A stretch of 64,000 nucleotides of DNA from Macrostomum hystrix (Eukaryota > Animalia > Platyhelminthes): NCBI GenBank assembly GCA_950097015.1, contig CATNEN010000007.1, forward strand, positions 2,356,001 through 2,420,000. Reading direction: 5' to 3'. Made by a program: the position numbers and the translations under genes. Below the pieces are notes generated by a model that did no database searches, was not told the DNA's origin, and was given only the letters and a program-made list of their open reading frames with translations. This document shows positions 1 to 56,800 of this stretch, piece by piece. The first letter of the stretch is position 1. Each line of letters opens with the position of its first letter.

Positions 1-3000
1 CCAACTAGAGAGAATCGATAATCCAAACTAGACAGAATTGATAATCCAACTAGAGAGAATCGATAATCCAACTAGAGATAATCGATAATCCAACTAGAGA
101 GAATCGATAATCCAAACTAGAGAGAATCGATAATCCAAACTAGACAGAATTGATAATCCAACTAGAGAGAATCGATAATCCAAACTAGACAGAATTGATA
201 ATCCAACTAGAGAGAATCGATAATCCAAACTAGACAGAATTGATAACCCAACTAGAGAGAATTGATAATCCAAACTAGAGGGAATCGATAATCCAACTAG
301 AGAGAATCGATAATACAAACTAGAGGGAATCGATAATCCAACTAGAGAGAATCGATAATACAAACTAGACAGAATTAATAATCCAACTAGAGAGAATCGA
401 TAATCCAACTAGAGAGAATCGATCATTTAACTAGAGAGAATCGATAATCCAACTAGAGAGAATCGATAATCCAACTAGAGAGAATCGATAATCCAAACTA
501 GAGAGAATCGATAATCCAAACTAGACAGAATTGATAATCCAACTAGAGAGAATCGATAATACAAACTAGGCAGAATTGATAATCCAACTAGAGAGAATCG
601 ATAATCCAAACTAGAGAGAATCGATAACCCAACTAGAGAGAATTGATAATCCAAACTAGACAGAACCGATAATCCAACTAGAGAGAATCGATAATCCAAA
701 CTAGACAGAATTGATAATCCAACTAGAGAGAATCGATAATCCAACTAGAGAGAATCGATAATCCAAACTAGAGAGAATCGATAATCCAAACTAGAGGGAA
801 TCGATAATCCAACTAGAGAGAATCGATAATACAAACTAGACAGAATTGATAATCCAACTAGAGAGAATCGATAATACAAACTAGGCAGAATTGATAATCC
901 AACTAGAGAGAATCGATAATCCAAACTAGAGAGAATCGATAACCCAACTAGAGAGAATTGATAATCCAAACTAGACAGAACCGATAATCCAACTAGAGAG
1001 AATCGATAATCCAAACTAGACAGAATTGATAATCCAACTAGAGAGAATCGATAATCCAACTAGAGAGAATTGATAATCCAAACTAGACAGAACCGATAAT
1101 CCAACTAGAGAGAATCGATAATCCAAACTAGACAGAATTGATAATCCAACTAGAGTGAATCGATAATCCAACTAGAGAGAATTGATAACCCAACTAGAGA
1201 GAATTGATAATCCAAACTAGAGGGAATCGATAATCCAACTAGAGAGAATCGATAATACAAACTAGACAGAATTAATAATCCAACTAGAGAGAATCGATAA
1301 TCCAACTAGAGAGAATCGATCATTTAACTAGAGAGAATCGATAATCCAACTAGAGAGAATCGATAATCCAACTAGAGAGAATCGATAATCCAAACTAGAG
1401 AGAATCGATAATCCAAACTAGACAGAATTGATAATCCAACTAGAGAGAATCGATAATACAAACTAGGCAGAATTGATAATCCAACTAGAGAGAATCGATA
1501 ATCCAAACTAGAGAGAATCGATAACCCAACTAGAGAGAATTGATAATCCAAACTAGACAGAACCTATAATCCAACTAGAGAGAATCGATAATCCAAACTA
1601 GACAGAATTGATAATCCAACTAGAGAGAATCGATAATCCAACTAGAGAGAATCGATAATCCAAACTAGAGAGAATCGATAATCCAAACTAGACAGAATTG
1701 ATAATCCAACTAGAGAGAATCGATAATACAAACTAGGCAGAATTGATAATCCAACTAGAGACAACTGATAATCCAACTAGAGAGAATCGATAATCCAAAC
1801 TAGACAGAATTGATAATCCAACTAGAGAGAATCGATAATCCAACTAGAGAGAATCGATAATCCAACTAGAGAGAATCGATAATCCAAACTAGAGAGAATC
1901 GATAATCCAAACTAGACAGAATTGATAATCCAACTAGAGAGAATCGATAATCCAACTAGAGAGAATCGATAATCCAAACTAGAGAGAATCGATAATCCAA
2001 ACTAGACAGAATTGATAATCCAACTAGAGAGAATCGATAATCCAAACTAGACAGAATCGATAATCCAAACTTGACAGAATTGATAATCCAACTAGAGAGA
2101 ATCGATAATACAAACTAGGCAGAATTGACAATCCAACTAGAGACAACTGATAATCCAACTAGAGAGAATCGATAATCCAAACATGAGAGAATCGATAATA
2201 CAAACTAGGCAGAATTGACAATCCAACTAGAGACAACTGATAATCCAACTAGAGAGAATCGATAATCCAAACTAGACAGAACCGATAATCCAACTAGAGA
2301 GAATCGATAATCCAAACTAGACAGAATTGATAATCCAACTAGAGAGAATCGATAATCCAACTAGAGAGAATCGATAATCCAAACTAGAGAGAATCGATAA
2401 TCCAAACTAGAGAGAATCGATAATCCAAACTAGACAGAATTGATAATCCAACTAGAGAGAATCGATAATCCAAACTAGACAGAATTGATAATCCAACTAG
2501 AGAGAATTGATAATCCAAACTAGAGGGAATCGATAATCCAACTAGAGAGAATCGATAATACAAACTAGACAGAATTAATAATCCAACTAGAGAGAATCGA
2601 TAATCCAAACTAGAGAGAATCGATAATCCAAACTAGACAGAATTGATAATCCAACTAGAGAGAATCGATAATCCAAACTAGACAGAATTGATAATCCAAC
2701 TAGAGAGAATCGATAATACAAACTAGAGTGAATCGATAATCCAACTAGAGAGAATTGATAACCCAACTAGAGAGAATTGATAATCCAAACTAGACATAAC
2801 CGATAATCCAACTAGAGAGAATCGATAATCCAAACTAGAGAGAATCGATCATTTAACTAGAGAGAATCGATAATCCAACTAGAGAGAATCGATAATCCAA
2901 CTAGAGAGAATCGATAATACAAACTAGACAGAATCGATAATCCAACTAGAGAGAATCGATAATCCAAACTAGAGAGAATCGATAATCCAAACTAGACAGA

Positions 3001-3681
3001 ATTGATAATCCAACTAGAGAGAATCGATAATCCAAACTAGACAGAATTGATAATCCAACTAGAGAGAATCGATAATACAAACTAGAGTGAATCGATAATC
3101 CAACTAGAGAGAATTGATAACCCAACTAGAGAGAATTGATAATCCAAACTAGACAGAACCGATAATCCAACTAGAGAGAATCGATAATCCAAACTAGAGA
3201 GAATCGATAATCCAACTAGAGAGAATCGATAATCCAACTAGAGAGAATCGATAATCCAACTAGAGAGAATCGATAATACAAACTAGAGAGAATCGATAAT
3301 CCAACTAGAGAGAATCGATCATTTAACTAGAGAGAATCGATAATCCAACTAGAGAGAATCGATAATCCAACTAGAGAGAATCGATAATACAAACTAGAGA
3401 GAATCGATAATCCAACTAGAGAGAATCGATCATTTAACTAGAGAGAATCGATAATCCAACTAGAGAGAATCGATAATCCAACTAGAGAGAATCGATAATA
3501 CAAACTAGAGAGAATCGATAATCCAACTAGAGAGAATCGATAATCCAAACTAGACAGAATTGATAATCCAACTAGAGAGAATCGATAATCCAACTAGAGA
3601 GAATCGATAATCCAACTAGAGAGAATCGATAATCCAAACTAGAGAGAATCGATAATCCAACTAGAGAGAATCGATAATCCA
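1..3681. repeat. Tandem satellite of mixed 22-bp and 23-bp units (CCAACTAGAGAGAATCGATAAT / CCAAACTAGACAGAATTGATAAT); runs off the window start
   Basis: Units read directly from the sequence. Minus-strand ORFs here repeat every 15 aa, equal to the 45-bp dimer. A degenerate tail with a duplicated ~52-bp block follows at ~3682-3870. Lies downstream of the splice donor at 3941, so it is probably intronic. Confidence 0.97.
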
Positions 3682-3941: not shown

Positions 3942-6900
3942 CATGAAGGCATCGGCCAGAGTGTTTCCACCGGTGGCAGCCAGCAGGCAGTCGGTCTCCC
4001 TGGCCAGATTGGTCACAAAGCAGACCCAGGCCAGCCGCACAGCTGCATCAGCCGTCATCAGCTGGGCAGCGCTGGACGGCACCGGCAACTCGCCGCCATT
4101 CGCTGCGTCGATTGTGGAGGCCAAGGCGGAGCGGCAGGCGCCGGGCTCGGATGTCAGGTTGCTCAGCAGCGTCAGGCACTGGCGCAGACGCCGCTGCTGA
4201 TCAGAAGACGGCGATGAAGGACTGGCGGACTCCAGCAGCTGGAGGCGCAGCTCGACCAGGAAGCCGGGCAGAAGCGACAGCAGGCGGGGCCGGCAGGACT
4301 CGTACAGTGCCAGGTTGGCCAGCAGCTGGAGTGCGTACTGGGCCAGGCGGGGCGAAGCTGAGACATTGGCCGCCACGCTGCTGGCGATGTCAGCAATGGC
4401 CGGCTGGTTGGAGGGCACGCCTGGGTTGGGGCGAGGCGGTGGGGTTTCTGCTTGTGCGTGCCAACAGGAAATAGGGACTCAGCAGTTTTTAGTTCACGGG
4501 TTTGGAGATAAGGTGAGATTAGATAGCGGGACAATCAGACAGGGGAGATAATACTAAAGGTAGATAATAGACAGGGGAGATAATACTCAAGGTAGATAAT
4601 AGACGGGGGAGGTAATAGACAGGGGAGATAATACTCAAGGTAGATAATAGACGGGGGAGATAATACTTAAGGTAGATAATAGACGGGGGAGGTAATACTC
4701 AAGGTAGATAATAGACGGGGGAGGTAATAGACAGGGGAGATAATACTAAAGGTAGATAATAGACAGGGGAGATAATACTCAAGGTAGATAATAGACGGGG
4801 GAGGTAATAGACAGGGGAGATAATACTCAAGGTAGATAATAGACGGGGGAGATAATACTCAAGGTAGATAATAGACGGGGGAGGTAATAGACAGGGGAGA
4901 TAATACTCAAGGTAGATAATAGACAGGGGAGATAATACTCAAGGTAGATAATAGACAGGGGAGATAATACTCAAGGTAGATAATAGACAGGGGAGATAAT
5001 ACTCAAGGAAGATAATAGACGGGGGAGATAATACTCAAGGTAGATAATAGACAGGGGAGATAATACTCAAGGTAGATAATAGACAGGGAGATAATAGACA
5101 AGGTAGATCGGGTAGATAAATAGACAGTATAGAAAATCGACAGGGAAGAGACAAGATAGAAGAGAGATAAGACATAGGAGAGACTAGACAAGGGTTAGAT
5201 TAGACAGGAGAGAGATTACACATTGGAAAGACTAGACAGAAAGACCAGAAAGACCAGCAGTCAGGCCGCTCACCGGAGAAGTTGATGAGGTTAAGCAGGC
5301 ACTGCAGCCGGACCTCCACAGCGGCTGAGTCGGAGCTGCCAACCCGACCGGTTCGGCGGAAAGCGTCGCAGATGGCGGCGACCAGGCAGCCACCGCGGCT
5401 GAGCCGGTCCATGTGGTGCTGGAACTGGGCCAGCCGGCCAATGAGCTGCATAGTCCTGACAGTGTCCGAGTCGCTGCCGCTAACCAGACACCTGGCCAGA
5501 ACCAGCGAGTCGCGATCTGTGAGCTGAACACTGGCGCAGTCGGATTTGCTCATTGCGGCCAGCCTGCTGGCAATGAACTCAGGCGTCAGATCATCAGGCA
5601 CATCGCCAACTGAAGAAGCGCTGTTAGCCGCAGCCTCTGAGTTAGACACCTTGGCTGCTTTGATTTCCTGTAGAAAATTAAAAAGATCAAACAGACAGGA
5701 TGTTTCTTCCGCATTGCTATAATAAAAGTTAAATAGGCCAGTTTGTGTACAGACCTGCTCAAAGTCTGAGTCGATAATCTCAGTTTCTGAGCTGGCAGCG
5801 GCGGCACCCAAATCATTCTGAGCTGATTTGTAAGCATCGGATCGAGCCGTCAATACTCGGCTGCTTGCCGTAGAATCATCTATGACAGTCTCGTCTGCTG
5901 CGGTGGACGATGCCGGTTCTTCCTCAACTATGGGAGTAACGGTGGACGATGCCGGTTCTTCCTCAACTATGGGAGTAACGGTGGACGATGCCGGTTCTTC
6001 CTCAACTATGGGAGTAACATGACGCCGTTTGATGGGCCCGGCAGCTTCTGGAGGCCTGACTGAAGTGTCAGCGGGTAGAGACTCCATTTGTAAGTCTTCA
6101 GAGGCTGCTGAAGCTACCAACGATTCCACAGCCTCCAGCTCCGAGTTAGCCAATGATTCATCAGGCTTGGCTGGACTCTCAGCCGATTGGTTTGCTTCCT
6201 GCTGCTTTGTTGATTTACCTGAGTTACAAAAGAAAAAATTGGCTGATTTAGGTTGCAATTTTCAGCTTGGCCACGCAATAACTAGCCAAATACTTTATAA
6301 TTTTCAGTTATTACAAAGTTTATCAGCATACTGTACTTAATACATATAACTTCCATTGATTATATTAAAATTACAGTCAGAAGAAATCACGTTACAACCA
6401 ATGCTAGCTAATGGATCATAAAGTTTAACTATCATAGCTATCTCTTAATAGTATAAGAATGTTTCAAAGCAGGCTACTTAAAAACAGTCTTTTTACTACT
6501 TTTAGCATGAAAACATGTTCAAAAAGATTCAAATATTGTCACTCATAGGACAAAAAGTTGGATGCAAAGATTAATTTTTGCATAGAAACATGCATAGTAA
6601 AGAAAAAAAGTATACCTAGAAAATATTTAAAAAGAGCTCAACATTAGTGGTAACAAAAAACAGAATCACATTACTAAAAATTTAATTTACTGCTTTTTGG
6701 ATTTAACTTTTTTAGTTTCAAAGAAACTCCTTTTTAAATAAATTGCATAAGGGTAAACATGTCATGTTTTCTAGCATGCAATCTATGTTAGTGACATTTT
6801 ACTGCGCAGTAAAAATGGCTAACTTTACTACATAGTAATGTCAAATGCAGTGAAGTTAGTGGTTTTTACTGCACTGTTTATAACATATTAAAAAACCACA

Positions 6901-14734: not shown

Positions 14735-16324
14735 ATGCCCCAGCGACAAGGCTCCTCTGGAGTAACTGGCTTCCTTGCGTTCTCCTGCTTTGCCGCATTC
14801 CTTGGCGCCGTCTGCTTCGGCTGGAGCACCGGCGTTATTAACAATCCAAAGACTAGCATCGTTCAATTGATCGTCAACTCGGTGCTCGCACACTACGGAG
14901 TGCGCCTGTCTGCCTATGCGTCGGAAGTGCTGTTCTCTGTAGTTGTGTCCATGTTTGCCGTGGGTGGCATGATCGGTGCCCTGGTCAGCGGTTACTGGGC
15001 TGAGAAGCTCGGGCGCAGGAACGGCATGCTGATTAATTCCGTTGTTGGCGTTGTGGCCGCTCTGCTGATGTCGCTTGCCAATCCAACTGGAAGCTTCGAG
15101 ATGCTGATAGTTGGCCGGCTGGTCATCGGATTCTGCAGCGCCCTCTACACCGGGCTGGTGCCGATTTACCTGACTGAGATTGCACCAAGGCGACTGCGAG
15201 GAGGGATCGGCGTGCTCAACCAGCTCGGCGTGGTGACTGGACTTCTTCTGTCGCAAGCTCTCAGCATCCAACAGGCGCTAGGTGGACCGCAGCTCTGGCC
15301 AATCTTGTTTGCCATCGCAGGCTTGCCGAGCCTCCTGCAGTTAGTTTGCCTGCCAGCCTGTCTGGAGACGCCACGGCACCTGCTGCTGACTCGACGCGAT
15401 GAGACTGCCGCGCGCTCAGCACTGCGTCGCCTACGCGGTTTTGGCAGCTGCCTGGCGGACGAAGATAATGAAATAATCGACGAGGAGATAGCAGAGATTC
15501 GCGCCGAATCAAACGAACAGTCAGGTGAGCAGCAGCAGGGCTGCTCGCGGCTCACTGCCCAGTGGCGGCCCCTGATAGTCGGCATTGTGCTGCACCTTTC
15601 GCAGCAGCTGTCGGGCATCAATGTTATATTTTACTACTCAGCTGATCTCTTCCAAGGCGTCGGGGTTTCGAATTCGGCTGCCCAGCTGGCCACGATCGCT
15701 GTGGGTGCAATCATGGTGGTCATGACCATCGTCTCTGTGCCGCTAATGGACCGCGCTGGAAGACGAACGCTTCACTTAATTGGTCTGGCTGGCATCACCG
15801 TCACCTCAGCGCTCTTCACCGTCCTATTTAGCGTCGGACAGCAGCAGAAAAGCGGCGTCGACGGCACGGTGCCCGCCGGTCTCGCCGGAGGCAGCATCGC
15901 GTTCGCGCTGCTAGTTGTTGTGTTCTTCGCCATCGGCCCCGGCTCCATTCCGTGGATGATGATGTCGGAGATGTTTCCACAGGATTCACGCTCAGCGGCC
16001 AACGCTGTTGGTGTTCTGGTCAACTGGCTGGCGAACTTCGCTGTGGGCATGCTGTTCCCAGTGCTCCTGGACAGCCTGCACTCGCTGGTGTTCGTGCCGT
16101 TCACCATCCTGACCGCACTTTTCCTAGTTTTTCTGTTCTTGCGCATGCCGGAGACGAAGGGGCGCAGCATCGATCAGATTGTGGCTTCGTTTAGTCGCGG
16201 CAGCGGCAGCTCAGTGAGTCCAGACGGTGGTGACAAAGGCGCCGCGAGCGAGGCGACAGTAATCCTGCAGGACACGGGCAGCCGGAGACTGAGTGGCAGA
16301 GGCGGCAGCGGAACCTACACTTAG
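14735..16324 (+). CDS. SLC2A: Facilitated glucose transporter, GLUT/SLC2A class I-like, intronless (529 aa)
   Basis: About 12 TM segments with sugar-porter motifs GRRNG, EIAPRRLRG, NQLGVVTG, ETPR, QQLSGINVIFYYS, DRAGRRTL, GPGSIPW and PETKG. Confidence 0.96.
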   Translation: MPQRQGSSGVTGFLAFSCFAAFLGAVCFGWSTGVINNPKTSIVQLIVNSVLAHYGVRLSAYASEVLFSVVVSMFAVGGMIGALVSGYWAEKLGRRNGMLINSVVGVVAALLMSLANPTGSFEMLIVGRLVIGFCSALYTGLVPIYLTEIAPRRLRGGIGVLNQLGVVTGLLLSQALSIQQALGGPQLWPILFAIAGLPSLLQLVCLPACLETPRHLLLTRRDETAARSALRRLRGFGSCLADEDNEIIDEEIAEIRAESNEQSGEQQQGCSRLTAQWRPLIVGIVLHLSQQLSGINVIFYYSADLFQGVGVSNSAAQLATIAVGAIMVVMTIVSVPLMDRAGRRTLHLIGLAGITVTSALFTVLFSVGQQQKSGVDGTVPAGLAGGSIAFALLVVVFFAIGPGSIPWMMMSEMFPQDSRSAANAVGVLVNWLANFAVGMLFPVLLDSLHSLVFVPFTILTALFLVFLFLRMPETKGRSIDQIVASFSRGSGSSVSPDGGDKGAASEATVILQDTGSRRLSGRGGSGTYT

Positions 16325-17883: not shown

Positions 17884-18655
17884 ATATGTTTCGTTTGGAT
17901 TAAATTTGGATCAAAATTGACAAAGCTCACAACCGAGGAGTCTCTGTCAGAGACTCTACAAGCGATCCTCAAGCGGAGTGATTGCTTGGAACACTTACAT
18001 GAGCACTAGCAGGCTGCAAAACAGACCATGGACTGGTCCTCATGGAGCTGGAACAAAGCAGTTTCAAAAGCTGAAAAAAAGAAAATATTTTGTCTAATTG
18101 TTTGATGTGAGTTGAGCACGTGATTGACAAGCGAACAATAAGTTTATTACTGATCAATTCATTCGCAACCTTAACAAAAAAGAATAACAATATTATAAAT
18201 GTCTTTTAAACGTTTTGTTGAAATCCCAAATGTACCAGTAAAGCGAGAGATTATTAGCTTGATTAAAAACAAGAGAAAAGCGGCGACTTGAATAAATGAA
18301 GCGCTGAAATCGAATAACAATATACGAGTATTAAGTTTTTAATAGATTTCTTGATTGAAAATTTCTGAAGTAAATATAGATTGATAAAAATATAACCGAC
18401 TGAATAAAAATCTTACACTCGGAGAGTGTCTGCAAGAGAAAAATTTCGTTTTCAGAAGTACATACCAGTTCTAGAATAAATACGAGGCGTGGCAAAAGAA
18501 GCACTGCAAGCGTTATTGAAATTAAGACAAATTTTCTGCCTACATTTATTTTAGCAATAAGATATCTGGCACTTCTCAGCAGCTATGGCAGCATAGCAAG
18601 TGCTACTACGTGTATCTGTGTCAGCTAGCTGGACTCAGTCGCATAGTTAGTCACC

Positions 18656-21600
18656 TCAATCAGCCGTCCTGCGATACAGAGACCGCTTCCAATGTCTTTC
18701 GCTCTCTTTCTCGGCAGCTTCAGCAAGTCGAAATGTGTTCCTTGGAGTCGCGTTGGCTGGCAGATTCCTTTCGGCCATCCGCTTGTAGATTTCCGTCGTC
18801 TCCGCACTCACCCGATCGTCTAGGAATACAAGAAAGCGCCGAGTCACCTTCGTCGCCTGCATCAGCTCCAGCAGGTCGGCCAGCAGCTGCCGGTTTTCCT
18901 CCGCCTCTTCCTGAAACCAGCGCACCATCGCGGGCGTCAGCAGGATGACAAACTGACGAGTGCGCTTAAGAAACCGCGGGGTCGCCTCAGCAGCGCCGTT
19001 GAACACGCGCTCGAAGCTGTCCGGAAAGGCAACCACCAGCGACGGCTGGCAGCTGGCTAGAAGAAGTCGACGGCTGGCGCTCTCGGCAACAATCGAGCGA
19101 AGTAGGCGAGCGGCGCTGGCCTCTTCAGGCGTTGGCGGCTGCGCCAACAGCAGGACGTCGCATCCACAGCCCCCCGAGTGGGGCGGCCACTCGGGCTGCT
19201 GCTGTAGCGTTGGCGCTACAGTCAGAGGAGAAATATTTATTGTTTCGCTTACATAATTTGTCAGTCAGCATATGAATCAAATTTACGAGCTATCAGACAG
19301 TGTGCATACTCACTGAACTTTAATTTCGAGTCTCACAACAACCCCCAACCCTTCTCTCTATATATGGACCCTGGACAGGGCGAGAAATGGATATCTTACT
19401 TGTACTTTTGATGAGATAAACAGACCCCTTGGCTCGCCCTTCACTATCTGCGCGAATGCAATCAGCAGCTGAAGTCAAGTCGCCTTACCCGCCATGTCAA
19501 GTGTGCAGACGTCATCCATCAGAGAGCCTGAATCGGTTGGCATTCCTCCAGCACCTGCTAAGATTTCCACATCTTCCTCTCCCGATAGCTCGACAGAAGC
19601 CCTCGTCCGCATCGGAACACCAGTCACTTGGTGCTGTTGCTGAAACTTTGCACGACAGACCAGCGAGGCCACTTTGTACTCCCAGTCAATGGTGCCATGC
19701 TGGACCGACCGGCTAAACAGAGCAGCAACCGCACCGGACACCTGGTGCCCATATGATTGTTGGGGACGTTCATTCGACAGGTCGCGAGCCAGTTTCAGAA
19801 GCACTATGTGATCGGATGGATTCCGACCGCTGGCTGACATTTCGTCCACGGCCTGCAGCAGGTCGTGAAAGCCGGCGTGAAGGAAGCGGCGAGACAGTAA
19901 CACCACAACCGTGCGGCTGAAGCGGACTCCATCCGACACCGACTCGAAGCGAGTCTGCTGCAGGAGACCGCTGCTACGATGAACGGCATAGTCTATGGCC
20001 TGGGAGCTGCTCAGGCGGTAGAATCGGAAAGCGGAGTCCAGGTCGCGAAGAACGCTGACAAGGGTCAACTCATCCTGAGGTGATGTTTTACATTGCTTTT
20101 CGTAACTTAACTAGTTTTAGCAAGTTTTGTATAAACATTGCATTGTTTAGCTATGTACGAGTATTAACTCAAAGCCATATGTACTAAGAAATTGCTGAGA
20201 ACGGTACAGAAAATCGGCGTTTAAATTTAAAATTAAGAAATTGGCTAAGACTGACACAAGATTGACCAGTAATCTAAGAACTAGCTAAGCGAGCTAGAAG
20301 GTATTTATATCGCCTAATTAAAAGTGATAAAACAGTGACCACTTTTTTTTACTAAATTTCGAATCGTTTGACGCTCATCGGAATTCATGCCGATGGGATT
20401 GAGTGCAGATATGACCCCAAATCTAATATCTTACCTGTTGATCGGCCAGAAAGAAGACGTCAAACTCGAAGGCATCACTGTGCCCGCCGCCGCTACTACA
20501 TAGGTCGCCCGTGCCGGCGGCTCTGCCGCTTCGCTGTCGTCGTGAGTTCTGCATGTACTTTAGAATGAAAAACATTTCCACCGCCCCATAAACTTTGTGC
20601 CGCTTAGTGACTAGCGCTACAAGCAGCAGGCACCCGAAAGCAGCCCCCACGGCTGTGAGTGTCCATTTAAGAACCGCTTGCCGCCTGGCATCTTGATAGG
20701 TTTCTATGGCAACGCAAAGCCGCTGCAATCTCCCTCTATCGTTAACTTGATAGGGCGCGCTTAAATTGAGTCTATAGTTCTCTGTCCAGCCCGAGTCGAT
20801 GTACTCATTGTAGGCCTCATTAAATATTTTGTCTAGGAATTTACACTCGATCTGTTCAAAGTCATTCACAAACTGGCCTAGCTGTGAGATGTTCATAAGC
20901 TGGGTCTGGAATCTGAGCCAGCCAGTTTCACATGAGCAAACCCAGGCGTTGCCGCGCAAAGTCAGTATGGAGAGGCGTCGAAAATTGTTGAAGATTCCGA
21001 GATCGAAGGGCCGAATGAGGTTATCGTGCAGCTCGAGCCGGCAGAGCTTGTCTTCTAGTCCCGTGAAGGTAAACTGGCTGATGACGCGAAGCTTGTTTTT
21101 GCTAAGATAAAGCATTTCAATGTTATAGGAAAAGTCCGTTCCATTGAACGCATAGTCCTCAATGTGCAGTATGTTGCTATTAGAGAGGCTGAGATAGCGC
21201 AGGCCATTGGAAGGTGACACCTGGGCATTGGCCCAGCTGATAGTGTTGCGCGTAAATTTTCCGGCAATGCCGATCATTTCGGCATTATTTAGCCACAGCT
21301 TCTTCACCGGAATGCGAATAGGCACGTTGAAGGGATCGGCCCGCAGGTAGTCGCAGTTCACGTCCGAGTAAATCCAGTCGAACGAGTGCCAGCAGAGACA
21401 GGATCGGATGCATTTGATGCGGTGCGGCCCCGTCCAGTTTTTCGGAAAGTACTGGGGATAAATTTCCACTTCCATCTCATCGTAGTAGGGACAGATGAAG
21501 TCGCTGGGATGAGATTGTTCTAAAGTTTTCAATGACTTTTGAGTCGCATTCTCGCGATCGAAGAACTCGCAGCTGTATTTCTTAGTTTCGGTGGTCGCGA

Positions 21601-23478
21601 ACTGCGGGTACTGATAGACTTGAGTGCAGTCCTTTCCCTGCTTCTGAACCTCGTGCTCCGAAATGGCATAAACATGGCTGCAAGGGCACTGCTGCTCCAC
21701 TTTCTGGTCGGAGATAAATAGCAACACTCGGGACGCTCTATTGCTCCGGTTGCTCATTTTGAAATAGTCGCTGTGCCAGTCGGTGATGCTGTTGTTCCTC
21801 AGTTCCAGGCTGTGCAGCTGGGTCAGGTTGGTAAAGCAGTCGCAGTCAATGTCGCTGATGAAATTGTGGTTTAGCCTGATTAGCGTGAGATTCGGCGATT
21901 GTGGAATGCTGCTAGTCAATATCATTTTCAGATCGTTATTTGAAATCTCAAGTTTCTCCAGGCGGGTTAGAGAAGCGAGCTCGAACTTTTGCAGCCAGTT
22001 ATAATTGAGACTCAGTTCTAGTAGGCTGGTGGTCAGAACAGATTGGCTGAATGCCATGGCGTTTATAGACTTCAAATAATTGTGAGACAAGTCGAGGTAC
22101 TGTAGTTTGACCTACAACGGGACAGGGGCAAGTTCCGTAGTTAAAAGTATTGCTATGAATTGATCAGATAAATCAGATTTTTATAGGATATATCTCAAAG
22201 ATGGTGGCAAATATTTTATGTAATTCATGATTATTCTCCTTTGATCATTAATCTGTTTCTCACCTCAAACCAAGGTGACACCGCTCCAATGAAAGGTATC
22301 TGATTGTATGACAGATCGAGAATTCTTAAGCTGTCCTTGGGAGCACGGAACCAATAGCAGCAGGTCTGTACATCTGAGGGTGACCAGCACATGTTGTTGT
22401 CGTACAGGCTCGATATAGCATTGTGGCTCAGATTGAGCTTGATAAGATTGCTAAGAAGTGAAATCACATTTGGAATTTTAGTGAGCTGGTTGTAGGACAA
22501 GTCAAAGTGAGACAGCTGGCTGGGGATCAACTCCCATTTCTGCAGCCGTTCGAACAGCGGTCCCTCTCTAATACGGTGCTGAGCAAAGCTGAATGTGAAG
22601 CCACTCGTGCTGCTGCTGTCGTCACTTGCCTTAAAGAGCACTTTCTGCCAGGTGAGTTGGCCGAGCTGCTTTTTTAGCTTCACTAGCCAGGCCGTTTTAT
22701 TTCGCAGCGTCGCCGATCTGTTTTCGACGGCATCGTCCAGGTAGTGATTAAGCGAGTCCATCGCCAGGTCGTAAATATTTTCGCCAGCCATACTCAGATT
22801 GGCTCGGCTGACGACGAAATTCTGAAGCGACATCACACCCATCATGTTGGATACACTGATCACATCTAGCGGAGTGTCAATAAGCTGCATCTCGACCAGC
22901 CCCTGGCACTTCATGTTAAGATAGAGCGGAAAGTAGACCACAATGCAGTTGCGCAGAACCACCGAGATAAGTTTGCAGTGTCCGGGCTCGAAGGTGGAAT
23001 CGTATTCAAGCCTCTCGGTGTACAAGGCAGCGAGGCGCGAGTGCAACGGGCCCAGATTGGCCAGCATGACGCTCTCGTGAGTGCTGACGTTCTCTCGCTG
23101 GAGCTGGCCGAAGCTGAGATTTTCGTACTTCACCCGGCAGTGAATCAGCTCCACATTGTACGGTGGGAAAATCCTATCGTTGCCTCGAGAGTGCAGAAAG
23201 GTCATCTCGTGCAGGTCGACTTCACTTTTAAAGGTGAAGTTGCTGCAGTCGATGGTCAGCCTGGAGATGATCATGAATGGGAGCTGCTTGCACTCCAGTT
23301 CAAAGGAGCTTGAATTCACAGCCTCAACCAGATAACAGTGTACCATCTTAGACGCCAAGTCCTGACGACAGCTGCAGCTCACATTGGTGTCGTGCAACAC
23401 GTAATTTGGTGTCTGAGTATCTGCTGGGGCAGCTGGAGCAGCCAGCATCAGAGACATTATAATGATGAGTGCGTGCAT
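18656..23478 (-). CDS. Toll-like receptor: signal peptide, LRRs with internal cysteine clusters, LRRCT, TM, TIR, and a second TIR-like domain (1345 aa)
   Basis: Exons 23478-22264, 22111-20435, 20074-19489 and 19215-18656, all GT-AG with phases 0/0/1, total 4038 nt. Motifs: LRRs (LSHFDLSYNQL, LRILDLSYNQI, LYLSKNKL), internal QCPCSH and CIRSCLC...VNCD clusters, LRRCT LRGNAWVCSCE, TM WTLTAVGAAFGCLLLVALV, TIR FEFDVFF and SRTVVVLLSRRFL. Confidence 0.85.
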
Positions 23479-24690
23479 TGCATTGATTTCGGTTAGACAG
23501 CTCGGTAGCAGACGGAAATGCCAGATGTCCTAGATGCCAGATGCAGGCAGTTTGTAGGCAGTTTGCGAGCAGCGCTGGTCTCTAATAAGCCAGAGTAAAC
23601 AATCCAGGAGACAGGCAGATGCATACTGATCGCACGATAAATTTAGCATCGGTAGGACTTTGCCTGATAATTCCGAACAACTTCAGAGTGTCGATAAGAG
23701 ATTGACCGTAAACCCGGCCGCAGCTGCAACTAAAAATAGAACCTGGGCCAGCAAAGCTGCAGTGACTCTGTGAGAGGCTGAAGTTCTGTCTGTGTACCGT
23801 TCACAGCAAAAACATATCAGCGCTTCCATCTGTTTAATGCTATAATGAATACATGACGATTGCTGTTACATTTCACCATAGCAATACGCTCGTATAACCT
23901 TCTACATGAAAGTTGTTTATTTGAAATATAAATTTACATCTCACAAATCGAAACCAGCACCAAAAACGACCTGAATTTAAGGCAGTATTTTGAAACAATT
24001 AGTTTAACATTTTCAGAAATTTGAAACACAATCTATAGCTTGAGAAAATCTGAGTAATTGGAAGATATTTCAAGTGCTGTGATTATCCAGCAGCGCTTTG
24101 ATTACACGGAATTAGTTAATACGTAATACACGCTTGTGTTTAAAAATACTGAACTAGAGACTCTATCGAAAAGAAAAACGAAAAAGGGAGATCATCGACG
24201 AAATTTTTAAATTACGTAGGTCTGCAAGTTCAATATAGAAGTTCACTTATAAAAAATGAAAGATACATGGACGTGCTTAATTGTGCTGTCAGTTTCATGC
24301 GTCCAAGTCACAATGTTTCTATGCGTCCATTTTCGGGAATAGAAATAAATAAATAAAGAAACGTGTCTGGCTGTTAGATGAGCTGAATAATGGAAACTAT
24401 GCATGAAGTGTTCGATGCCGCGATGAGGTAAACATCTCAGTGGTTAATAAGAAGTCGCCTTCAATGCTGAATTAGAATACTAGGTTACGAGCGTGCTTTT
24501 AATATTTAGGTCGTAGCTTAGCACGGTTGAGGTCCGTTGAGTTTGCATATCACCTGCGAGTTTACATAACCTGAAAATATAGCTTTCAGGCTTTTGCTCC
24601 CATTAATTGCCTCTATTTATTACACACCCCTTGTATTTGGACAGTAAAGTTAGATTTCATTTGAAAGGCATTCTGCATTTGCACTCTGCA

Positions 24691-26897: not shown

Positions 26898-27589
26898 ATA
26901 TTAGCAGATGAACTACCAAGGGGGAATCCCGCCTGACAATTATTGGTGCTGCACCTGAACAGAGAAACGCAACTGTTTAAACATCAGCGTAAAGCTCTGA
27001 AAGCATGGCAGACTGACAAATCAGTTGATAAACACTGAGGCGGATGCTGTTGCTCAGAAGGATATGTGAGAAGTCTACAAACAAATAGTCGGAGTTAGAC
27101 TATGGTATTCAGTGTCAAGCCGCGTGCCTACTTTAATGCTTGGTGCGTTCTGATTGGCTGGGTGGTCAAATTTTGGCAGGCGAGTGTTGTGGCTGTGGGG
27201 GTCCCGCGACTCTGAGCAGGCCGTCGCCTCTCAAAGCGGAAGCTCAGTTTCTTGATCAGTTTAAAAACTATTACGCTTGTAATACTGCTTCTAGAAAGTG
27301 TGTTTATAAAGGCAAAATTATTTTATGCGTTCAAACATTCTAGAAGGCACAAAACGATTTATTAAACGATTTATATAATTATCAAATATTAACTCACAAG
27401 AATAAGACAAGTAAAACAATTACCTAAGAAGTGAACTCAAAATGGTATCGGATGAATAAAACAACAATTATCAGCAAACACTTGACAGCAAAATTAAAAC
27501 AAAATGGTTCGGGGACACCATAAAAAGTTAAAAGGATAGAAATATCTTAAGAAAAAAAATCGGGCAGCTCATGGGTAGCTCATCATAGA

Positions 27590-28030
27590 ACTAGGTCGAT
27601 GATAGAACTAGGTCGATAATAGAACTAGGTCGATAATAGAACTAGGTCGATGATAGAACTAGGTCGATGATAGAACTAGGTCGATAATAGAACTAGGTCG
27701 ATGATAGAACTAGGTCGATGATAGAACTAGGTCATCATAGAACTAGGTCGATGATAGAACTAGCTCATGATAGAACTAGGTTGATGATAGAACTAGGTTG
27801 ATAATAGAACTAGGTCGATAATAGAACTAGGTCGATAATAGAACTAGGTCGATGATAGAACTAGGTTGATGATAGAACTAGGTTGATAATAGAACTAGGT
27901 CGATAATAGAACTAGGTCGATAATAGAACTAGGTCGATGATAGAACTAGCTCATGATAGAACTAGGTCGATGATAGAACTAGGTCGATAATAGAACTAGG
28001 TCGATGATAGAACTAGGTCGATGATAGAAC
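27590..28030. repeat. 17-bp minisatellite (AGAACTAGGTCGATAAT / AGAACTAGGTCGATGAT)
   Basis: Direct tandem repetition. Confidence 0.95.
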
Positions 28031-31206: not shown

Positions 31207-31934
31207 CTGACTCACTAATGGAATAGGGATTTGGGTAGTGGCTGACTCACTGATGGAATAGGGATTTGGGTAGTGGCTGACTCACTGATGGAATAGGGAT
31301 TTGGGTAGTGGCTGACTCACAGATGGAATAGGGATTTGGGTAGTGGCTGACTCACTGATGGAATAGGGATTTGGGTAGTGGCCGACTCACTGATGGAATA
31401 GGGATTTGGGTAGTGGCTGACTCACTGATGGAATAGGGATTTGGGTAGTGGCTGACTCACTGATGGAATAGGGATTTGGGTAGTGGCTGACTCACTGATG
31501 GAATAGGGATTTGGGTAGTGGCTGACTCACTGATGGAATAGGGATTTGGGTAGTGGCCGACTCACTGATGGAATAGGGATTTGGGTAGTGGCTGACTCAC
31601 TGATGGAATAGGGATTTGGGTAGTGGCTGACTCACTGATGGAATAGGGATTTGGGTAGTGGCTGACTCACTGATGGAATAGGGATTTGGGTAGTGGCCGA
31701 CTCACTGATGGAATAGGGATTTGGGTAGTGGCTGACTCACTGATGGAATAGGGATTTGGGTAGTGGCTGACTCACTGATGGAATAGGGATTTGGGTAGTG
31801 GCTGACTCACTGATGGAATAGGGATTTGGGTAGTGGCTGACTCACTGATGGAATAGGGATTTGGGTAGTGGCTGACTCACTGATGGAATAGGGATTTGGG
31901 TAGTGGCTGACTCACTGATGGAATAGGGATTTGG
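31207..31934. repeat. 35-bp minisatellite, 21 units (CTGACTCACTGATGGAATAGGGATTTGGGTAGTGG)
   Basis: Period of 35 verified. 18 units carry TGACTCA; three (31382, 31557, 31697) read CCGACTCA. Confidence 0.97.
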
Positions 31935-48300: not shown

Positions 48301-51300
48301 ATGGCTGCCGCAATGGACATCCTTGGAGCCGCTTCGGCCGACAGCCAGAAGCAACAGCAGCAGCAGCAGAAGCAGCAAATGTCAATTGATGACGATGATG
48401 AGGAGCCGTTTCACCTGGCGGGCCTCTTCCTTGGGGCTAGAGACGGCGATGCTGCGCGCGTCAAACAGGAGCTGCTCCTTCTGCCCGCAACCGTTGAGAT
48501 CAACGGCCGTAATCGCAGCGGCGAGACTGTCGTCCACGTCGCCGTGCCCACTGGCTCCCTGGCAATCCTTGAGGCGCTTCATCAGCGGGGCGTCGACATG
48601 CACCAGCTGAACCGGGCCTGCGAGAACGGCCTGCACATTGCCTGCAGACTTGGCGACATCAACGTGGCTCGATTCTTTGTTGAACGAGCCGCCGTTTGTG
48701 TAGACGGCCAAACCAAGGACGGCGACTCGCCAGTTCACCTGGCTGTGAAGAGGGGTCACGCCGGTGTTGTTGAATATCTCGGCTCGCGGGGCGCTAATCT
48801 GAATGCGCAAGATCGCTCATTCGAGACACCGCTGCACGCTGCTGCTGCTGCTGGCAGCGTCGACTGCGTCCGCACACTGGTGCAAGCTGGCGCCAGGATC
48901 TACATGGAGGACCGCGTCGGCTGGACCCCACTGGAGCATGCAATCAAGCGTCACCAGACAACCATTGCGCTCATGCTCATTAACGCAGGTGCGCCGATAG
49001 ACCATGTTGACCATCAGAAGAGAGAGTGCCCGCTACATCTGGCTTGCCGCGAGGGTCTTCTACCTGTGGTGCAGGCTCTCTGCGCCTACGGCTGCCGAGT
49101 GGACGTCTACAACGCTTTGGGCGTGACTCCACTGCATATCGCATCCCGCGCTGGTCACTTGGAGCTCGTCCGCTGCCTCCTACTAGCAGGCGCGAGTCCT
49201 CAGTTGACTAGTCGCGACGGCGTCCTGCCCGAGGTGATGGCGCTGGCTCAGAATCATACCCTCACGGCCAGTCTCTTGGGAAAGATGCGTCCGGAGAGAC
49301 GAGCAATTTGTGTGGAGCAGCTGGTGCCCACACAGCGCCCGCTGCCCCGCATCAAGCTGAAGGTGTTCGGCGACAGCGCCTCTGGCAAGTCTTCGCTGAT
49401 CGGCAGCCTTAGATCGAATGCCATCACGGGCTTCTTTCGAAAAAAGTTTAAAAGTCAAGATGAAGCAAACAGTCTAGATGATGAGACTCAGACATTCTCC
49501 ATGCGTTCGAGAACAATGCCTGTCGAGATGAACTTCGAAGCGGTTCACGAGGCCTACACGAAAGGAATTCAAGTGCAGAGCATCGGAATCACAGGTGCTG
49601 GAGACTTCTCAGTCTGGGAATTTTCTGGCTATCAACCATACTACCTGTTCTACGACCACTTCATCGGTGACACATCATGTGTCCACCTGATTCTGTTCAA
49701 TTTGATGGACAGCTTTGAGCTGATGCGTCAAAAGGTCATGTTCTGGGTGAACTTTGTCATGGGTCGGATTCCGGCTCGGGAGCCGCTGGGCTTCTGTGGT
49801 AAGCCGAAGAGCATGGCCCGCATAGCGCTGGTGGGCACTCACAGCGACCGCGCCGCCGGATTGAGAAATGCCGAAGGCCTGCTTGAGAATCGAGACGCCG
49901 ACCGCATCCTAGAAGAGGTAATGGCTCTGACCCGCTACCGGCTTGATGTCTGCGATCGCATCTTTGTTGTGAATACCAGCGAGGCGATGTCGCCCGAGAT
50001 GAAGGCTCTGCGTAGCCAGCTGGCCGATTGGCGCGCCGAGATTCTTCGCCATCTTCCGTTTTCAAACGGATTCCTGGACGTGGTCATTAGCCGCATCTCC
50101 GAGTGGGTCAGCGGCACCCAGTTTCCTGTGTACACTTGGCAGCAATTCGTTGAGACCGTACGCAACAAGGTAAACCCCCTCTGTAGCGAGGATCACCTGA
50201 AGGACCTGATCCAGGAGCTGCAGTATGCTGGAGAGGTCATCTACCTAGAGTCCGACGCCGGTCACGATATGATTGTGCTCAGTCCGCAGTGGCTCTGCTC
50301 CGGTGTACTCGGCTTTCTACTGTCGCAGGACAACATCTCCCAGGCTAGAGTCACTGGCAGTTTCACAGCAGACGACATTCAGTTTATGATTGCCGGAACG
50401 GAGGCTAACCAGCTCCTGCGGATTCTAACCGCCCTGGACCTGTGCACTCAAGTCGAGGTCGAAGACGAGATTCAGTACGAATTTCCCAGCCTGAACTTTC
50501 TGGACAGTGTTCGCGGCCTATGGGAAAAGGAGCCGCGGCACGACGCTTCAGTCTACGCCGGAATGCAGGTGCGAGCGACCAAGTCGCAACTGGTTCACAT
50601 ATTTCCCCGGCTTCAGTGCAGCCTTCGACGCAGCCTCAAGGTAGACAAGGACGATGAGCTTCACTCAGCCGTGCTGAGCGAGGCGGACCTGTTTCAGTGG
50701 CATCACGGCTCCAAGCTGTCACTGGCTGGCATTGAGTGCATGCTGCGAATGGAGGAGTGCGATCAGGTGCGTGCGTGCACGACTTCTAAGCTGCAAATTT
50801 TTCGCCAGTTCCTGATTTCCGAATTCTCCAAGTAGATTTTATTGCAAACGCTATTATAGGTGATACGCTTGAGAGCCAGGGGCCCCCGACAGCAACTACA
50901 ACTGCTGTTCGGAGTCTACCAGGACATGGTCAATCTGATTGAGCAGACCATCGAGGACACATGCCCCAGCATGGAGTACGAGGTTTCCGTTCTGAGTCCG
51001 AAGGAGTTGCGCAATCACTCCAAGGTGGCCATCGCGGTGCCGCAGGGCGTGGTGTACCGCGCCATCGAGGAGCAGCGCAACCGCGGCGGATCCCCCACAT
51101 CCGAAATCATCGTTAACTTCGAGGAAGGCCTCGTCATGGAGAGCCTGGAGAGTCTCTTGTGCTTCGGCAGCCGACAGCTGCTCAGCCAGCTGACTCTGGG
51201 CCCGGACTTGCACCTGTCCTGCCTGAGAACGCCCGCCTTCCAGCGCCTGTGCAGCATGTTCGATCCGGTTGATCCGCTGGGCAAGGACTGGTGCTTGCTG

Positions 51301-53871: not shown

Positions 53872-56800
53872 ATGCTGTCCATTCTTCTCCTACTGCTGCC
53901 AGCCAGTTGCTACGGAGTGTTGCAGCAGCAGCAGCAGCAGCAGCAGTCAGTCAAAGAGGTTCTGGCGGGCAGCTCTGTGCTGTTTCCATGCCCGGATGTT
54001 CAACCGCTGAGAACAGTCTCGCATTCGGGTTCAAAGAGGCCAGGTCGCCTGCTAATTCAACTGATTCACGGCGAAGGTTCAGGGCAGCAGGTCCTGCTGA
54101 CTCGTTGGGCCGCCATCGGCCAGTCGCAATCAACGACATCCGCGGATTCCACGTTCGAGCGTTCTCGTCTCGCCTGGCTGAAATGCGTCGGAGCGGAGGG
54201 CGGCGGAGTCCGACTTGACAATGTCCGACCAGACGATCAGGGCATCTACGAGTGTCGCCTAAATGTCGAGGAGTTCAAAGCTTCTGGAGGCCAGCCAGAG
54301 GTGGTACAGAAACTGTCGTCAGTTTACTACCTTTTCGTGTTCGGTGAGTCACCGACACAGCCTGAATGACTGAGACACTGAATGACTGAGACGCTGAAGG
54401 ACTGAGACACTGAATGACCGAGACACTGAATGACTGAGACACTGAATGACTGAGACACTGAATGACTGAGACACTGAATGACTGAGACACTGAATGACTG
54501 AGACACTGAATGACTGAGACACTGAATGACTGAGACACTGAATGACTGAGACACTGAATGACTGAGACACTGAATGACTGAGACACTGAATGACTGAGAC
54601 ACTGAATGACTGAGACACTGAATGACTGAGACACTGAATGACTGAGACACTGAATGACTGAGACACTGAATGACTGAGACACTGAATGACTGAGACACTG
54701 AATGACTGAGACACTGAATGACTGAGACACTGAATGACTGAGACACTGAATGACTGAGACACTGAATGACTGAGACACTGAATGACTGAGACACTGAATG
54801 ACTGAGACACTGAATGACTGAGACACTGAATGACTGAGACACTGAATGACTGAGACACTGAATGACTGAGACACTGAATGACTGAGACACTGAATGACTG
54901 AGACACTGAATGACTGAGACACTGAATGACTGAGACACTGAATGACTGAGACACTGAATGACTGAGACACTGAATGACTGAGACACTGAATGACTGAGAC
55001 ACTGAATGACTGAGACACTGAATGACTGAGACACTGAATGACTGAGACACTGAATGACTGAGACACTGAATGACTGATACACTGAATGACTGAGACACTG
55101 AATGACTGAGACACTGAATGACTGAGACACTGAATGACTGAGACACTGAATGACTGAGACACTGAATGACTGAGACACTGAATGACTGAGACACTGAATG
55201 ACTGAGACACTGAATGACTGAGACACTGAATGACTGAGACACTGAATGACTGAGACACTGAATGACTGAGACACTGAATGACTGAGACACTGAATGACTG
55301 AGACACTGAATGACTGAGACACTTATACTGTGTATATGTTTTAAAGAACTTTTAAGGTTTAAAGTTGTGTATTTAAAGTCACAGACTTGCAGACATGTCG
55401 CTAAAATTTGCACATTGAAGCGCAAGACGCGATCGGGTAAAAACGGAATGAATGACAACAGGGTTTCAGATATCGTGTGGAACACCAAGTTGTAAAAGAA
55501 GATTTCTTAGCGACTTTAAATTTTACTTTAGCACGAAGAAAATGCGAGAATGGATATTACAGAATGATTGCTATGAAGTCACAGCAATGGGCTAGCTTGT
55601 CCATCTACCCTGTCCTTAAGCCGCTAAGTACGCTCTCGTAGACGGTATGGCCAATTCGAAAAAAAAACTGTCATACCCATTTCAGGAAAGACAGTTTTCA
55701 ACGTTTGGCTCTAGTAGAGATGATTTTCCATTGAAATAACTGAACTGGGAGTGACCATATGCCACTAGATTCTACACTAGGCTGGCCTCGATGCTTAGTG
55801 AATTCTCTGTTCACTAATCACTCATAACAAGCTCGTTTTGTCATAAAAAGTTAGTTTCTTTCAGTCCAGCCAAGCCTGTGGTCTCTCTTAACCATTATCC
55901 TGAATGAAAGCGAATCAATCGAACCTGCAGCGTTTCATGGAAATTCTATACCTTCCTCTACTCGCCAATTGATCTAGCAAAAGTGAAAAAATCTTTCACA
56001 GAATCTGAAACAGGAGAAGTTGCTGCATCAATAAGCAACAGATCAGCTTTTATTCGATTCGGAAAAAACCTGGCCCAATCTCTGTGATCGATTTTCACAG
56101 AGCCATACAATTAAGCTTGCCACATTGGCCAGAGACTGAAGCCACTGTAGCAGCGGGAATCTTTCAATACACCACCAAAGGTGACGCGGAGGGATCTCGT
56201 AGATTCCCTGCCCACTGATGAAGGCTGTGCCTTAGTAAAGATTGCTGAGTAATGGGATTTTAGGTGCGCCAAATCCCCCAGCGAAATGGCGGGCGTTAAT
56301 TCTTTCTCGATGCCGCGGTCTGCCCTCCCACAATGGTCAGCGACTGGGACAACGAGGAGGTCACTGCGGAAGACGGTCAGCAAAGGGGCTGGGACCTATG
56401 TGATATAGGCCAATCAGTGAGAAGTCCCCCTGGCCAATCTGAAATCTAATTGTCAGCTCTGAGCTCCCTGCCTCAGTCCAGTCCCTATTTTCTATCTATC
56501 TTCATTTGTCTCTGCCCTGTCCTAGTGGGTTACCATCAGCCAGCACCGCGGGGCAAGCCATGAATGCGATCCTCTCCCTAACTCTCTTTGCCGATGTGTC
56601 TCTTCTGATTCCCCATTGGTCTGCGCTGAGGATGCGAAACCTAGCCAGCTAATAGAGCTGAATAAGCATTTAGATGGGGATCTGTGGAGAATGCTGAGGG
56701 GATCTGCGGGGAATGCTGAGGGGATCTGTGGGGAATGCTGAGGGGATCTGCGGGGAATGCTGAGGGGATCTGCGGGGAATGCTGAGGGGATCTGTGGGGA

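Follow-up and report, generated by a model that had tools for sequence, protein, structure and literature searches.

A receptor gene of Toll-type layout with a putative, strongly diverged TIR domain in the flatworm Macrostomum hystrix

Toll-type receptors and flatworms

Drosophila Toll and the P-type Toll-like receptors (TLRs), whose multiple-cysteine-cluster architecture is taken here as defined in PMC8609888, are type I proteins with leucine-rich repeats (LRRs), an internal LRRCT-like and LRRNT-like pair, further LRRs, an LRRCT-like cap, a transmembrane (TM) helix and Box 1, all of which they have in common with the gene described here, where the cysteine clusters are recognised at motif level. 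The global consensus of Box 1 is YDVFISY, and Box 2, the BB loop, reads RDxxPG, or H-x-R-D-F-x-x-G in group 3 (PMC7075850). The bivalve SPP-2TIR mccTLRs, which likewise belong to a spiralian lineage, combine a multiple-cysteine-cluster ectodomain with tandem cytoplasmic domains (PMC10279657), while the LRR-only “TLR-like” receptors, such as Hydra HyLRR (cited in PMC8609888), pair with separate TIR-only proteins.

Platyhelminthes have been reported to be without TLRs in surveys from 2021 and 2023 (PMC8609888, PMC10279657, PMC7958881), as the original prediction, made from the DNA letters, had correctly stated; an early-flatworm or parasitism-linked loss of TLRs has been inferred from this reported absence. 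In Table 1 of the 2021 survey Macrostomum lignano is given 0 TLRs; the same survey reported flatworm “TLR-like” proteins and applied a TIR HMM as its first filter (PMC8609888).

The present gene is located on the minus strand of the window, the 64-kb stretch of M. hystrix DNA that was analysed. Compared with Drosophila Toll and the P-type TLRs, it has fewer canonical LRRs (about 12-14, counted by pattern), an N-terminal region of 300 aa without recognisable repeats, a TIR-like domain that is sub-threshold and devoid of the RDxxPG BB-loop motif, and an additional conserved C-terminal domain of 185 aa. The designation “canonical TLR” goes too far for this gene, in which Box 2 is absent and the extra domain is present. 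In comparison with the bivalve SPP-2TIR receptors, the second cytoplasmic domain lacks a demonstrable TIR signal and no resemblance of the two tail domains is detectable. A survey starting from a TIR HMM would file the gene with the HyLRR type, from which it differs by a long conserved two-domain tail with signals pointing to TIR.

Gene structure and transcription

Four exons on the minus strand form one open frame of 1345 codons (405 + 559 + 195 + 1 + 185) with no internal stops: exon 1 (22264-23478; 405 codons, start ATG at 23478), exon 2 (20435-22111; 559 codons), exon 3 (19489-20074; 195 codons plus 1 nt) and exon 4 (18656-19215; 2 nt plus 185 codons and the stop TGA at 18656-18658). The exon arithmetic and the splice sites thus bear out the frame proposed in the original prediction. 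The three GT..AG introns, also on the minus strand, measure 152 nt (intron 1, 22112-22263), 360 nt (intron 2, 20075-20434) and 273 nt (intron 3, 19216-19488) and have phases 0, 0 and 1, the split codon being GCG (Ala); the donors are GAG/GTGAGA, CAG/GTAAGA and CGG/GTAAGG, and an AG is found at every acceptor.

In intron-free contigs from three public runs, all three introns are excised at the exact predicted borders, including those of the junction 20435/20074, which falls within the TIR-like domain, and depth is zero across the intron bins. A single 3758-nt contig bridges all three exon junctions; the tail exons are therefore joined to the LRR exons, contrary to the outcome that had been named in advance as refuting the TLR claim. 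At the 5′ side a contig extends to 23523, and the 3′ UTR reaches at least to 18361; positions 22940-22986, in exon 1, are uncovered among the contigs listed, and both the open frame and the alignment with the orthologue are unbroken there. The gene is real, spliced and transcribed; the runs carry no RNA label on record, and their cDNA nature is taken from the absence of the introns. Neither Rfam nor a tRNA scan gave a match in the window.

Relatives in Macrostomum lignano

Searching 1.84 billion representatives with exon 3 retrieved M. lignano proteins as the only real relatives, and region searches with the M. lignano family proteins, extended to E<=10, stayed within that species; a word-index protein search with exon 3 gave no match in the range of 107-341 aa. 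The orthologue (PAA67356.1 / A0A267F0V0; 1357 aa) is 69% identical over exon 3, and a paralogue (Mlig017824; 1383 aa) is 31% identical; both share the build of LRRs, TM helix and two tail domains. PAA67356.1 and PAA88883.1 (BOX15_Mlig015932g1/g2; A0A267F0V0 and A0A267GS98) resemble the present gene in having four exons, the same domain order and a transporter gene as neighbour, with an identity of 63-70% per exon; the dS > 1 marks them as coming from a different species. The window was not taken for M. lignano itself, given this dS and a 90%-cluster search in which a 69%-identical protein would have surfaced had the database contained it. The neighbour is an intronless sugar-transporter (MFS) gene (14735-16324, plus strand) with 85% amino acid identity to the M. 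lignano copy, which serves as synteny marker: in M. lignano, too, it is downstream of the orthologue and on the opposite strand. The syntenic orthologue with the same introns confirms the macrostomid host that had been suspected.

Identity to M. lignano is 81% in the TIR-like core, as against 63-67% in the ectodomain, and dN/dS is about 0.09-0.2 in all exons; the gene is under purifying selection. A full-text literature search found no paper describing the M. lignano orthologue, whose labels are automatic only (“hypothetical protein”, “TIR domain-containing protein”).

Ectodomain and topology

All features of the ectodomain are encoded on the minus strand. A signal-peptide-like N-terminus (~23422-23478, exon 1) precedes a Cys-rich region of about 300 aa, also in exon 1, on which no Pfam match was obtained, and the first canonical LRRs begin at residue 322 (22264-22515, exon 1). 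Exon 2 continues with LRR block 1 (21737-22111), the internal cysteine clusters (21353-21688), LRR block 2 (20942-21289) and a membrane-proximal LRRCT-like cluster with the pattern GNAWVCSC ... C ... C (20714-20938; exon-2 residues 392-466). The internal clusters, recognised at motif level, consist of an LRRCT-like pattern, CxC-C-C-C (residues 142-207), followed by an LRRNT-like one, C-x3-C-x-C-x12-C (residues 234-253). The TM helix (20606-20665; exon-2 residues 483-502, about 888-907 of the protein), located by a hydropathy scan, is followed by KRHK.

Pfam LRR_8 matched exon 1 with E=2e-8 and exon 2, in four stretches, with E=6e-24, and LRR_4 and LRR_1 matched as well. Only the N-terminus and exon-2 residues 479-503 contain hydrophobic 19-mers scoring > 1.6, and 18 NxS/T sites precede the TM helix, with one after it; signal peptide, TM helix, cysteine clusters and the asymmetry of the glycosylation sites thus fit a type I receptor. 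The multiple-cysteine-cluster architecture claimed in the original prediction is matched by the cysteine patterns, but the Pfam LRRCT and LRRNT models are silent on the cysteine clusters and on the N-terminal 300 aa. Judged from these patterns, the predicted order of signal peptide, Cys-rich region, LRRs, internal LRRCT-like and LRRNT-like clusters, LRRs, LRRCT-like cap and TM helix is that of the multiple-cysteine-cluster, protostome-type receptors. In UniRef, an N-terminal fragment of the orthologue is named “LRRCT domain-containing”.

Against PDB sequences, the ectodomain alignment passes through the LGR4-VLR cap “NpW-CsC”, and the LRR ectodomain is as similar to LGR4, LRIG, ALS and LRRC32 as to TLRs, so that membership in the TLR family cannot be read from the ectodomain alone.

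The first cytoplasmic domain

The cytoplasmic tail, of 435 aa, comprises two conserved domains; the linker between them (exon 3 residues 151-195; 31% identity to M. lignano) evolves fast. The first domain starts at the extreme 3′ end of exon 2 (20435-20470, minus strand), where, at motif level, the Box-1-like FDVFFLA is found (20444-20464, minus strand), about 45-50 residues past the TM helix; its counterpart in the paralogue is YDAMLWA. Intron 2 interrupts the domain past Box 1, and the sequence of this exon 2/3 junction is unbroken in the M. lignano orthologue protein. The TIR-like core corresponds to residues 1-150 of exon 3 (19625-20074, minus strand). As the original prediction had noted, a clear BB-loop motif is missing: the tail of the window protein contains neither RDxxPG nor any PG, and RD..PG is found in neither the orthologue nor the paralogue. 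DWEY, about 140 residues past Box 1, is invariant across the family members and may sit where the beta-E / Box 3 tryptophan is expected.

With the isolated domain of the orthologue, PF01582 was the sole Pfam family found, at E=0.11 and 12.7 bits, where the curated cutoff is 21.3; across 24,736 models this amounts to about 4e-6 per model, and the sub-threshold match counts only because TIR had been named as test family in advance. In this collinear match, domain residues 60-101 align with profile positions 46-85; the same segment is covered by the NCBIfam AlsR match of comparable strength, which was judged spurious. Exon by exon, Pfam matched LRRs only; it returned no TIR for exons 3 and 4 or for the domain of the paralogue, and none at E<=0.1 for the orthologue from M. 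lignano at full length. Among language-model neighbours, TIR clusters were top both for the orthologue (0.90; 22 of its 30 hits) and for the 31%-identical paralogue (0.89), scores which, with 159-163 shared features, are in the range that the tool calls a lead only. The automatic UniRef names comprise “TIR domain-containing protein” in five cases and “Protein toll” for two fragments.

Neither phmmer, run with exon 3 and the domain of the paralogue, nor profiles gave anything significant against PDB sequences; TLR5 (E=1.2; profile positions 1-77 aligned to chain 667-745) was the sole TIR-bearing chain among the 15 noise-level matches of the family profile. The AlphaFold2 model of the first domain, from a 4-row alignment, was unusable (mean pLDDT 36.7), and Foldseek with the low-confidence models of both tail domains found only noise in the PDB. 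The HMMER and AlphaFold checks recommended for the TIR claim thus returned a sub-threshold PF01582 match and two unusable models; Box 1, the weak Pfam match, the language-model neighbours and the automatic UniRef names speak for the claim, whereas the absence of a Pfam TIR match at the cutoff and the failure of both models count against it. Taken together, the sequence evidence suggests that the first tail domain is probably, although not provenly, a strongly diverged TIR. Such divergence would make its position among the metazoan TLR clades alpha, beta and gamma (PMC8609888) doubtful.

The second cytoplasmic domain

The domain encoded by exon 4 is conserved, with 70% identity to the orthologue and 31% to the paralogue, and is of alternating strand/helix character. 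Exon 4 yielded nothing or noise against the PDB (phmmer and profile), and its AlphaFold2 model, from five rows, was unusable (pLDDT 44.5). NCBIfam and PADLOC searches with six tail pieces produced spurious matches only (AlsR, E=0.03; PP2C, E=0.022), and the first and second tail domains showed no resemblance in hhalign (probability 0.1%).

Interpretation

The best explanation, which we consider probable, is that the locus encodes an expressed type I receptor of Toll/TLR design, diverged and missed by surveys that begin with a TIR HMM. Its diverged TIR would keep Box 1, a beta-C/alpha-C region weakly matched by the Pfam TIR model and the invariant DWEY, and would have lost the RDxxPG motif of the BB loop. 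By analogy with Toll and the TLRs, a ligand on the LRR ectodomain would cause receptor dimerisation, and the TIR-like domains, brought together in this way, would form a platform for TIR-containing adaptors; with the BB-loop motif absent, the interface with such partners would have to be unlike the one in canonical TLRs. For the second tail domain, a role as a built-in partner or regulator is conceivable.

An artefact, be it a pseudogene, a contaminant or a mis-joined model, is hardly credible as an explanation: the uncovered stretch in exon 1 and the unlabelled runs could be cited in its favour, but the frame is open over all 1345 codons, the splice sites are canonical with exact intron removal in three runs, intron positions and neighbour gene agree with M. 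lignano, and dN is far below dS in each exon, so that this reading is already close to refuted. It is more conceivable, albeit unlikely, that the gene encodes a “TLR-like” receptor with LRRs only, the tail being built from alpha/beta domains that are specific to Macrostomum and have no relation to TIR, and the role being of the adhesion or guidance type (as in FLRT, LRRTM and Tartan/Capricious) or in another signalling route. The TIR models that all remain below threshold, noise matches as strong as the TIR match, the empty or noise-level PDB sequence searches, the absence of a fold from AlphaFold, the non-TLR LRR proteins as best PDB matches of the ectodomain and the flatworm “TLR-like” proteins of the 2021 survey (PMC8609888) would all suit this view. 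It leaves aside, however, that the partial Pfam match, the language-model neighbours and the rule-based UniRef names each pick TIR among thousands of families, and in two 31%-identical paralogues; moreover, FDVFFLA and YDAMLWA are at the right spacing from the TM helix for a TIR, and the domain length and the order of strands and helices suit one.

The tail may instead be TIR-derived in both of its domains, which would make the receptor a flatworm counterpart of the bivalve SPP-2TIR mccTLRs; this, too, is judged improbable. The second domain is kept in orthologue and paralogue and opens with the Box-1-like CDVLLLA / EVFILSA; it contains a strand RQFV(I/L)LL(T/S) followed by an invariant W, with another invariant W about 155 residues past its start, its low-confidence model suggests an alternating strand/helix order, and two-TIR mccTLRs are known from mussels (PMC10279657). 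On the other hand, Pfam, NCBIfam, PADLOC and the PDB give the second domain no TIR support, the two domains are dissimilar by hhalign and the AlphaFold model is unusable. In its widest and equally doubtful form, the proposal would be that macrostomids, which are free-living and branched off early, keep a small mccTLR family with both tail domains descended from TIR, a design inherited from a spiralian ancestor and shared with the bivalve two-TIR receptors, whose divergence here puts it out of range for HMM surveys; TLRs would then not have been lost at the base of the phylum, but specifically in later flatworm lineages.

For the favoured Toll/TLR-design receptor, a miss by the surveys is plausible, given the TIR-HMM-first filter and a domain under the Pfam cutoff; the suggestion that loss of the BB-loop motif was responsible is likewise plausible. 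“Overlooked” is not wholly accurate, since UniRef already names the orthologue and the paralogue automatically as TIR-containing. The claim is tempered accordingly: the TIR fold is putative, and the automatic “TIR domain” label of the orthologues predates this analysis. If the reading is true, an expressed and conserved LRR-TM receptor, TIR-like in its tail and shared by two species of Macrostomum, would date the loss of TLRs after the macrostomid split, and fast-evolving receptors would be under-counted by TIR-HMM-first surveys. Macrostomum lignano is a laboratory model in regeneration research, and whether a flatworm Toll-type receptor has an immune or a developmental role is directly testable in this species.

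Gene Structure and Transcripts

The candidate Toll-like receptor gene is read from the minus strand in four exons: E1 (23478-22264, 405 codons), E2 (22111-20435, 559 codons), E3 (20074-19489, 195 codons plus 1 nt) and E4 (19215-18656, 2 nt plus 185 codons and TGA). This exon model was taken from the minus strand of 18500-23700, translated by script, and the scripted translation of E1-E4 gave the same sum, 1345 codons, as the original prediction. The codon split between E3 and E4 is GCG (Ala); the donors are GAG/GTGAGA, CAG/GTAAGA and CGG/GTAAGG, and the acceptors are AG after pyrimidine-rich tracts. For the searches, the exons were used one by one, the contiguous Macrostomum lignano orthologue being used where joined sequence was required.

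Sampled words of the receptor stretch, 84% of which is exon, were present at 72-79% in four public sequencing runs (X2-X5), which belong to one study and were the only ones containing it. The contigs of X2, X3 and X4 have zero depth in the intron bins, and these runs, which carry no RNA record, were taken as cDNA because the introns are missing. Three contig joints show CT..AC ends on the plus strand, corresponding to GT..AG on the gene strand: 19215→19489, which allows no shift of the cut, 20073→20434, which allows +1 (adjusted to 20074→20435), and 22109→22262, which allows +2 (adjusted to 22111→22264). Once adjusted, the joints from X2, X3 and X4 coincide exactly with the three predicted junctions, including 20435/20074. 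A single contig of 3758 nt (X2, record 3) spans 18397-22939 and crosses all three joints; thus, the tail exons and the LRR exons are on one transcript. On its 5′ side the transcript is covered by a contig ending at 23523, and on the 3′ side it extends to 18361 or further. In X2, X3 and X4 alike, contigs stop and then restart around a 48-nt stretch of E1 (~22937-22987), possibly owing to an allelic bubble or to a filter; the reading frame and the alignment with the M. lignano orthologue are continuous across this break. The contig-covered 5′ UTR also holds an upstream ORF of eight codons (23459-23485), whose out-of-frame ATG lies 5 nt 5′ of the receptor start codon and which overlaps this start.

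Ectodomain and Membrane Topology

Residues 321-394 of E1 and the E2 sequence match the Pfam LRR_8, LRR_4 and LRR_1 models, with LRR_8 reaching E=6e-24 across four stretches of E2, while the N-terminal 300 residues of the receptor gave no match. A hydropathy scan found only two hydrophobic spans, one at the N-terminus and one at E2 residues 483-502, followed by KRHK; 18 NxS/T sites precede the transmembrane helix and one follows it. In a search of PDB sequences, LGR4/5, LRIG1, ALS and LRRC32 resembled the ectodomain at least as closely as TLR3, 5, 8, 13 or mosquito Toll. Since LRR proteins that are not TLRs match at least equally well, the repeats cannot settle family membership.

Three cysteine clusters were recognized in E2 at the motif level: CxC-C-C-C (residues 142-207), C-x3-C-x-C-x12-C (234-253) and GNAWVCSC...C...C (392-466). 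Protostome-type receptors are defined by an LRRCT-LRRNT ... LRRCT arrangement (PMC8609888), and the clusters would correspond, as motifs, to this pattern; the Pfam LRRCT and LRRNT models gave no match on them.

The Cytoplasmic Tail

The tail comprises a TIR-like domain, coded by the end of E2 and by E3 (domain 1), and a second domain coded by E4 (domain 2). The RDxxPG motif of the BB-loop, of which the original prediction saw no clear copy, was indeed not found in the tail. Pfam searches revealed no TIR in E3, E4, the full-length orthologue (P0001), a full-length paralogue (P0003) or the paralogue's domain, and searches of PDB sequences gave nothing significant for the tail. AlphaFold2, run on shallow alignments, gave mean pLDDT values of 36.7 for domain 1 and 44.5 for E4, hence no usable model, and Foldseek with these two low-pLDDT models returned noise only.

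The sole Pfam match on the isolated P0001 domain is PF01582, the TIR family (E=0.11, 12.7 bits), aligning residues 60-101 with profile positions 46-85. Its significance, ~4e-6 per model and ~2e-4 after allowing for ~10 pieces and ~5 TIR-like models, applies to TIR as the family chosen for testing beforehand; because a spurious match to the NCBIfam AlsR model was equally strong, scores of this size are meaningless for a family not named in advance. A language-model feature search placed TIR clusters at the top for P0001 (0.90; 22 of 30 matches) and, in a separate run, for the paralogue with 31% identity (0.89), scores that the tool itself grades as a lead only. Both paralogue groups are also named TIR by the rule-based naming of UniRef. 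When the trimmed family profile was compared with the PDB, all 15 matches were at noise level, and TLR5 was the one chain among them that carries a TIR, profile positions 1-77 aligning with chain residues 667-745. A Box-1-like motif, FDVFFLA in the window and YDAMLWA in the paralogue, lies ~45-50 residues beyond the transmembrane helix (the global Box 1 consensus is YDVFISY; PMC7075850), and an invariant DWEY, ~140 residues past this motif, occupies the expected site of the beta-E / Box 3 tryptophan. As judged from its sequence, domain 1 is quite probably a TIR domain.

Domain 2 (18656-19215; 185 aa, cytoplasmic, C-terminal of the TIR-like domain) is kept in the M. lignano orthologue (70%) and in the paralogue (31%); it begins with a Box-1-like motif and contains the strand RQFV(I/L)LL. 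Family searches assigned it to no family and gave it no support as a TIR, and hhalign detected no similarity between domains 1 and 2. A twin-TIR receptor is conceivable, since multiple-cysteine-cluster TLRs with two TIR domains are known in mussels (PMC10279657); unlike these, the second tail domain of the window receptor has no TIR match. Of the complete receptor originally proposed, the Toll design and the spliced transcript stand, whereas the TIR assignment becomes a probable one, for a TIR-like domain that lacks the BB-loop motif and is accompanied by an extra tail domain.

Relatives and Previous Reports

In a set of 1.84 billion representative proteins, the E3 search returned four matches, two of which were repeat-protein noise and two genuine, both from M. 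lignano. P0001 (1357 aa; PAA67356.1, BOX15_Mlig015932g1) is 69% identical to the E3 query. For P0003 the identity is 31%, and this protein occurs at full length as P0010 (1383 aa; BOX15_Mlig017824g1) and P0011 (1330 aa). Mlig017824 is a second M. lignano gene group with the same LRR-TM-two-domain build as Mlig015932. No other relative emerged from these representative proteins, which suggests a family restricted to Macrostomum.

The M. lignano locus (GCA_002269645.1, NIVC01001489.1) has an identical four-exon structure and, as in the window, an MFS sugar transporter downstream on the opposite strand (14735-16324, plus strand; intronless, 529 aa, Sugar_tr E=5e-116). By this synteny the host is a macrostomid, and dS, saturated (>1) between the two loci, shows it to be a species other than M. 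lignano. Amino acid identity is 67% for E1, 63% for E2, 69% for E3 (81% in its core, residues 1-150, and 31% in the linker, residues 151-195) and 70% for E4, against 85% for the transporter; dN/dS is ~0.09-0.2 in each exon. On these comparisons, the receptor gene is under purifying selection and evolves 2-3 times faster than the neighboring transporter.

The absence of TLRs from Platyhelminthes, mentioned in the original prediction, is the published view (PMC8609888, PMC10279657, PMC7958881, PMC7075850). Table 1 of PMC8609888 reports zero TLRs for M. lignano, and an early loss in the phylum was inferred; "TLR-like" proteins are mentioned there as present, with data not shown. The first step of that pipeline is a selection of proteins by TIR HMM, a filter that would drop the window receptor gene. 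A limited full-text literature search found no description of the Mlig015932 and Mlig017824 proteins. Automatic database labels already exist for the orthologues: UniRef uses "TIR domain-containing protein" for the P0001 group and the paralogue group, and "Protein toll" for fragments of the P0001 group. The original interpretation is partly supported: the window gene codes for a Toll-design receptor with a diverged TIR-like domain, in a phylum for which the published surveys give no TLRs.

Other Features of the Window

Many long satellite arrays separate the genes, at 1-3681, 4537-5108, 27585-28030, 31207-31934, 54362-55323 and 62309-64000. Among them, the window opens with 164 copies of a 22-bp unit, another array consists of 60 copies of a 16-bp unit, and a CA-rich 20-22-bp array closes the window. 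A long ORF on the plus strand (48301-50835) codes for ankyrin repeats together with a weak COR-A (Roc-COR) match.
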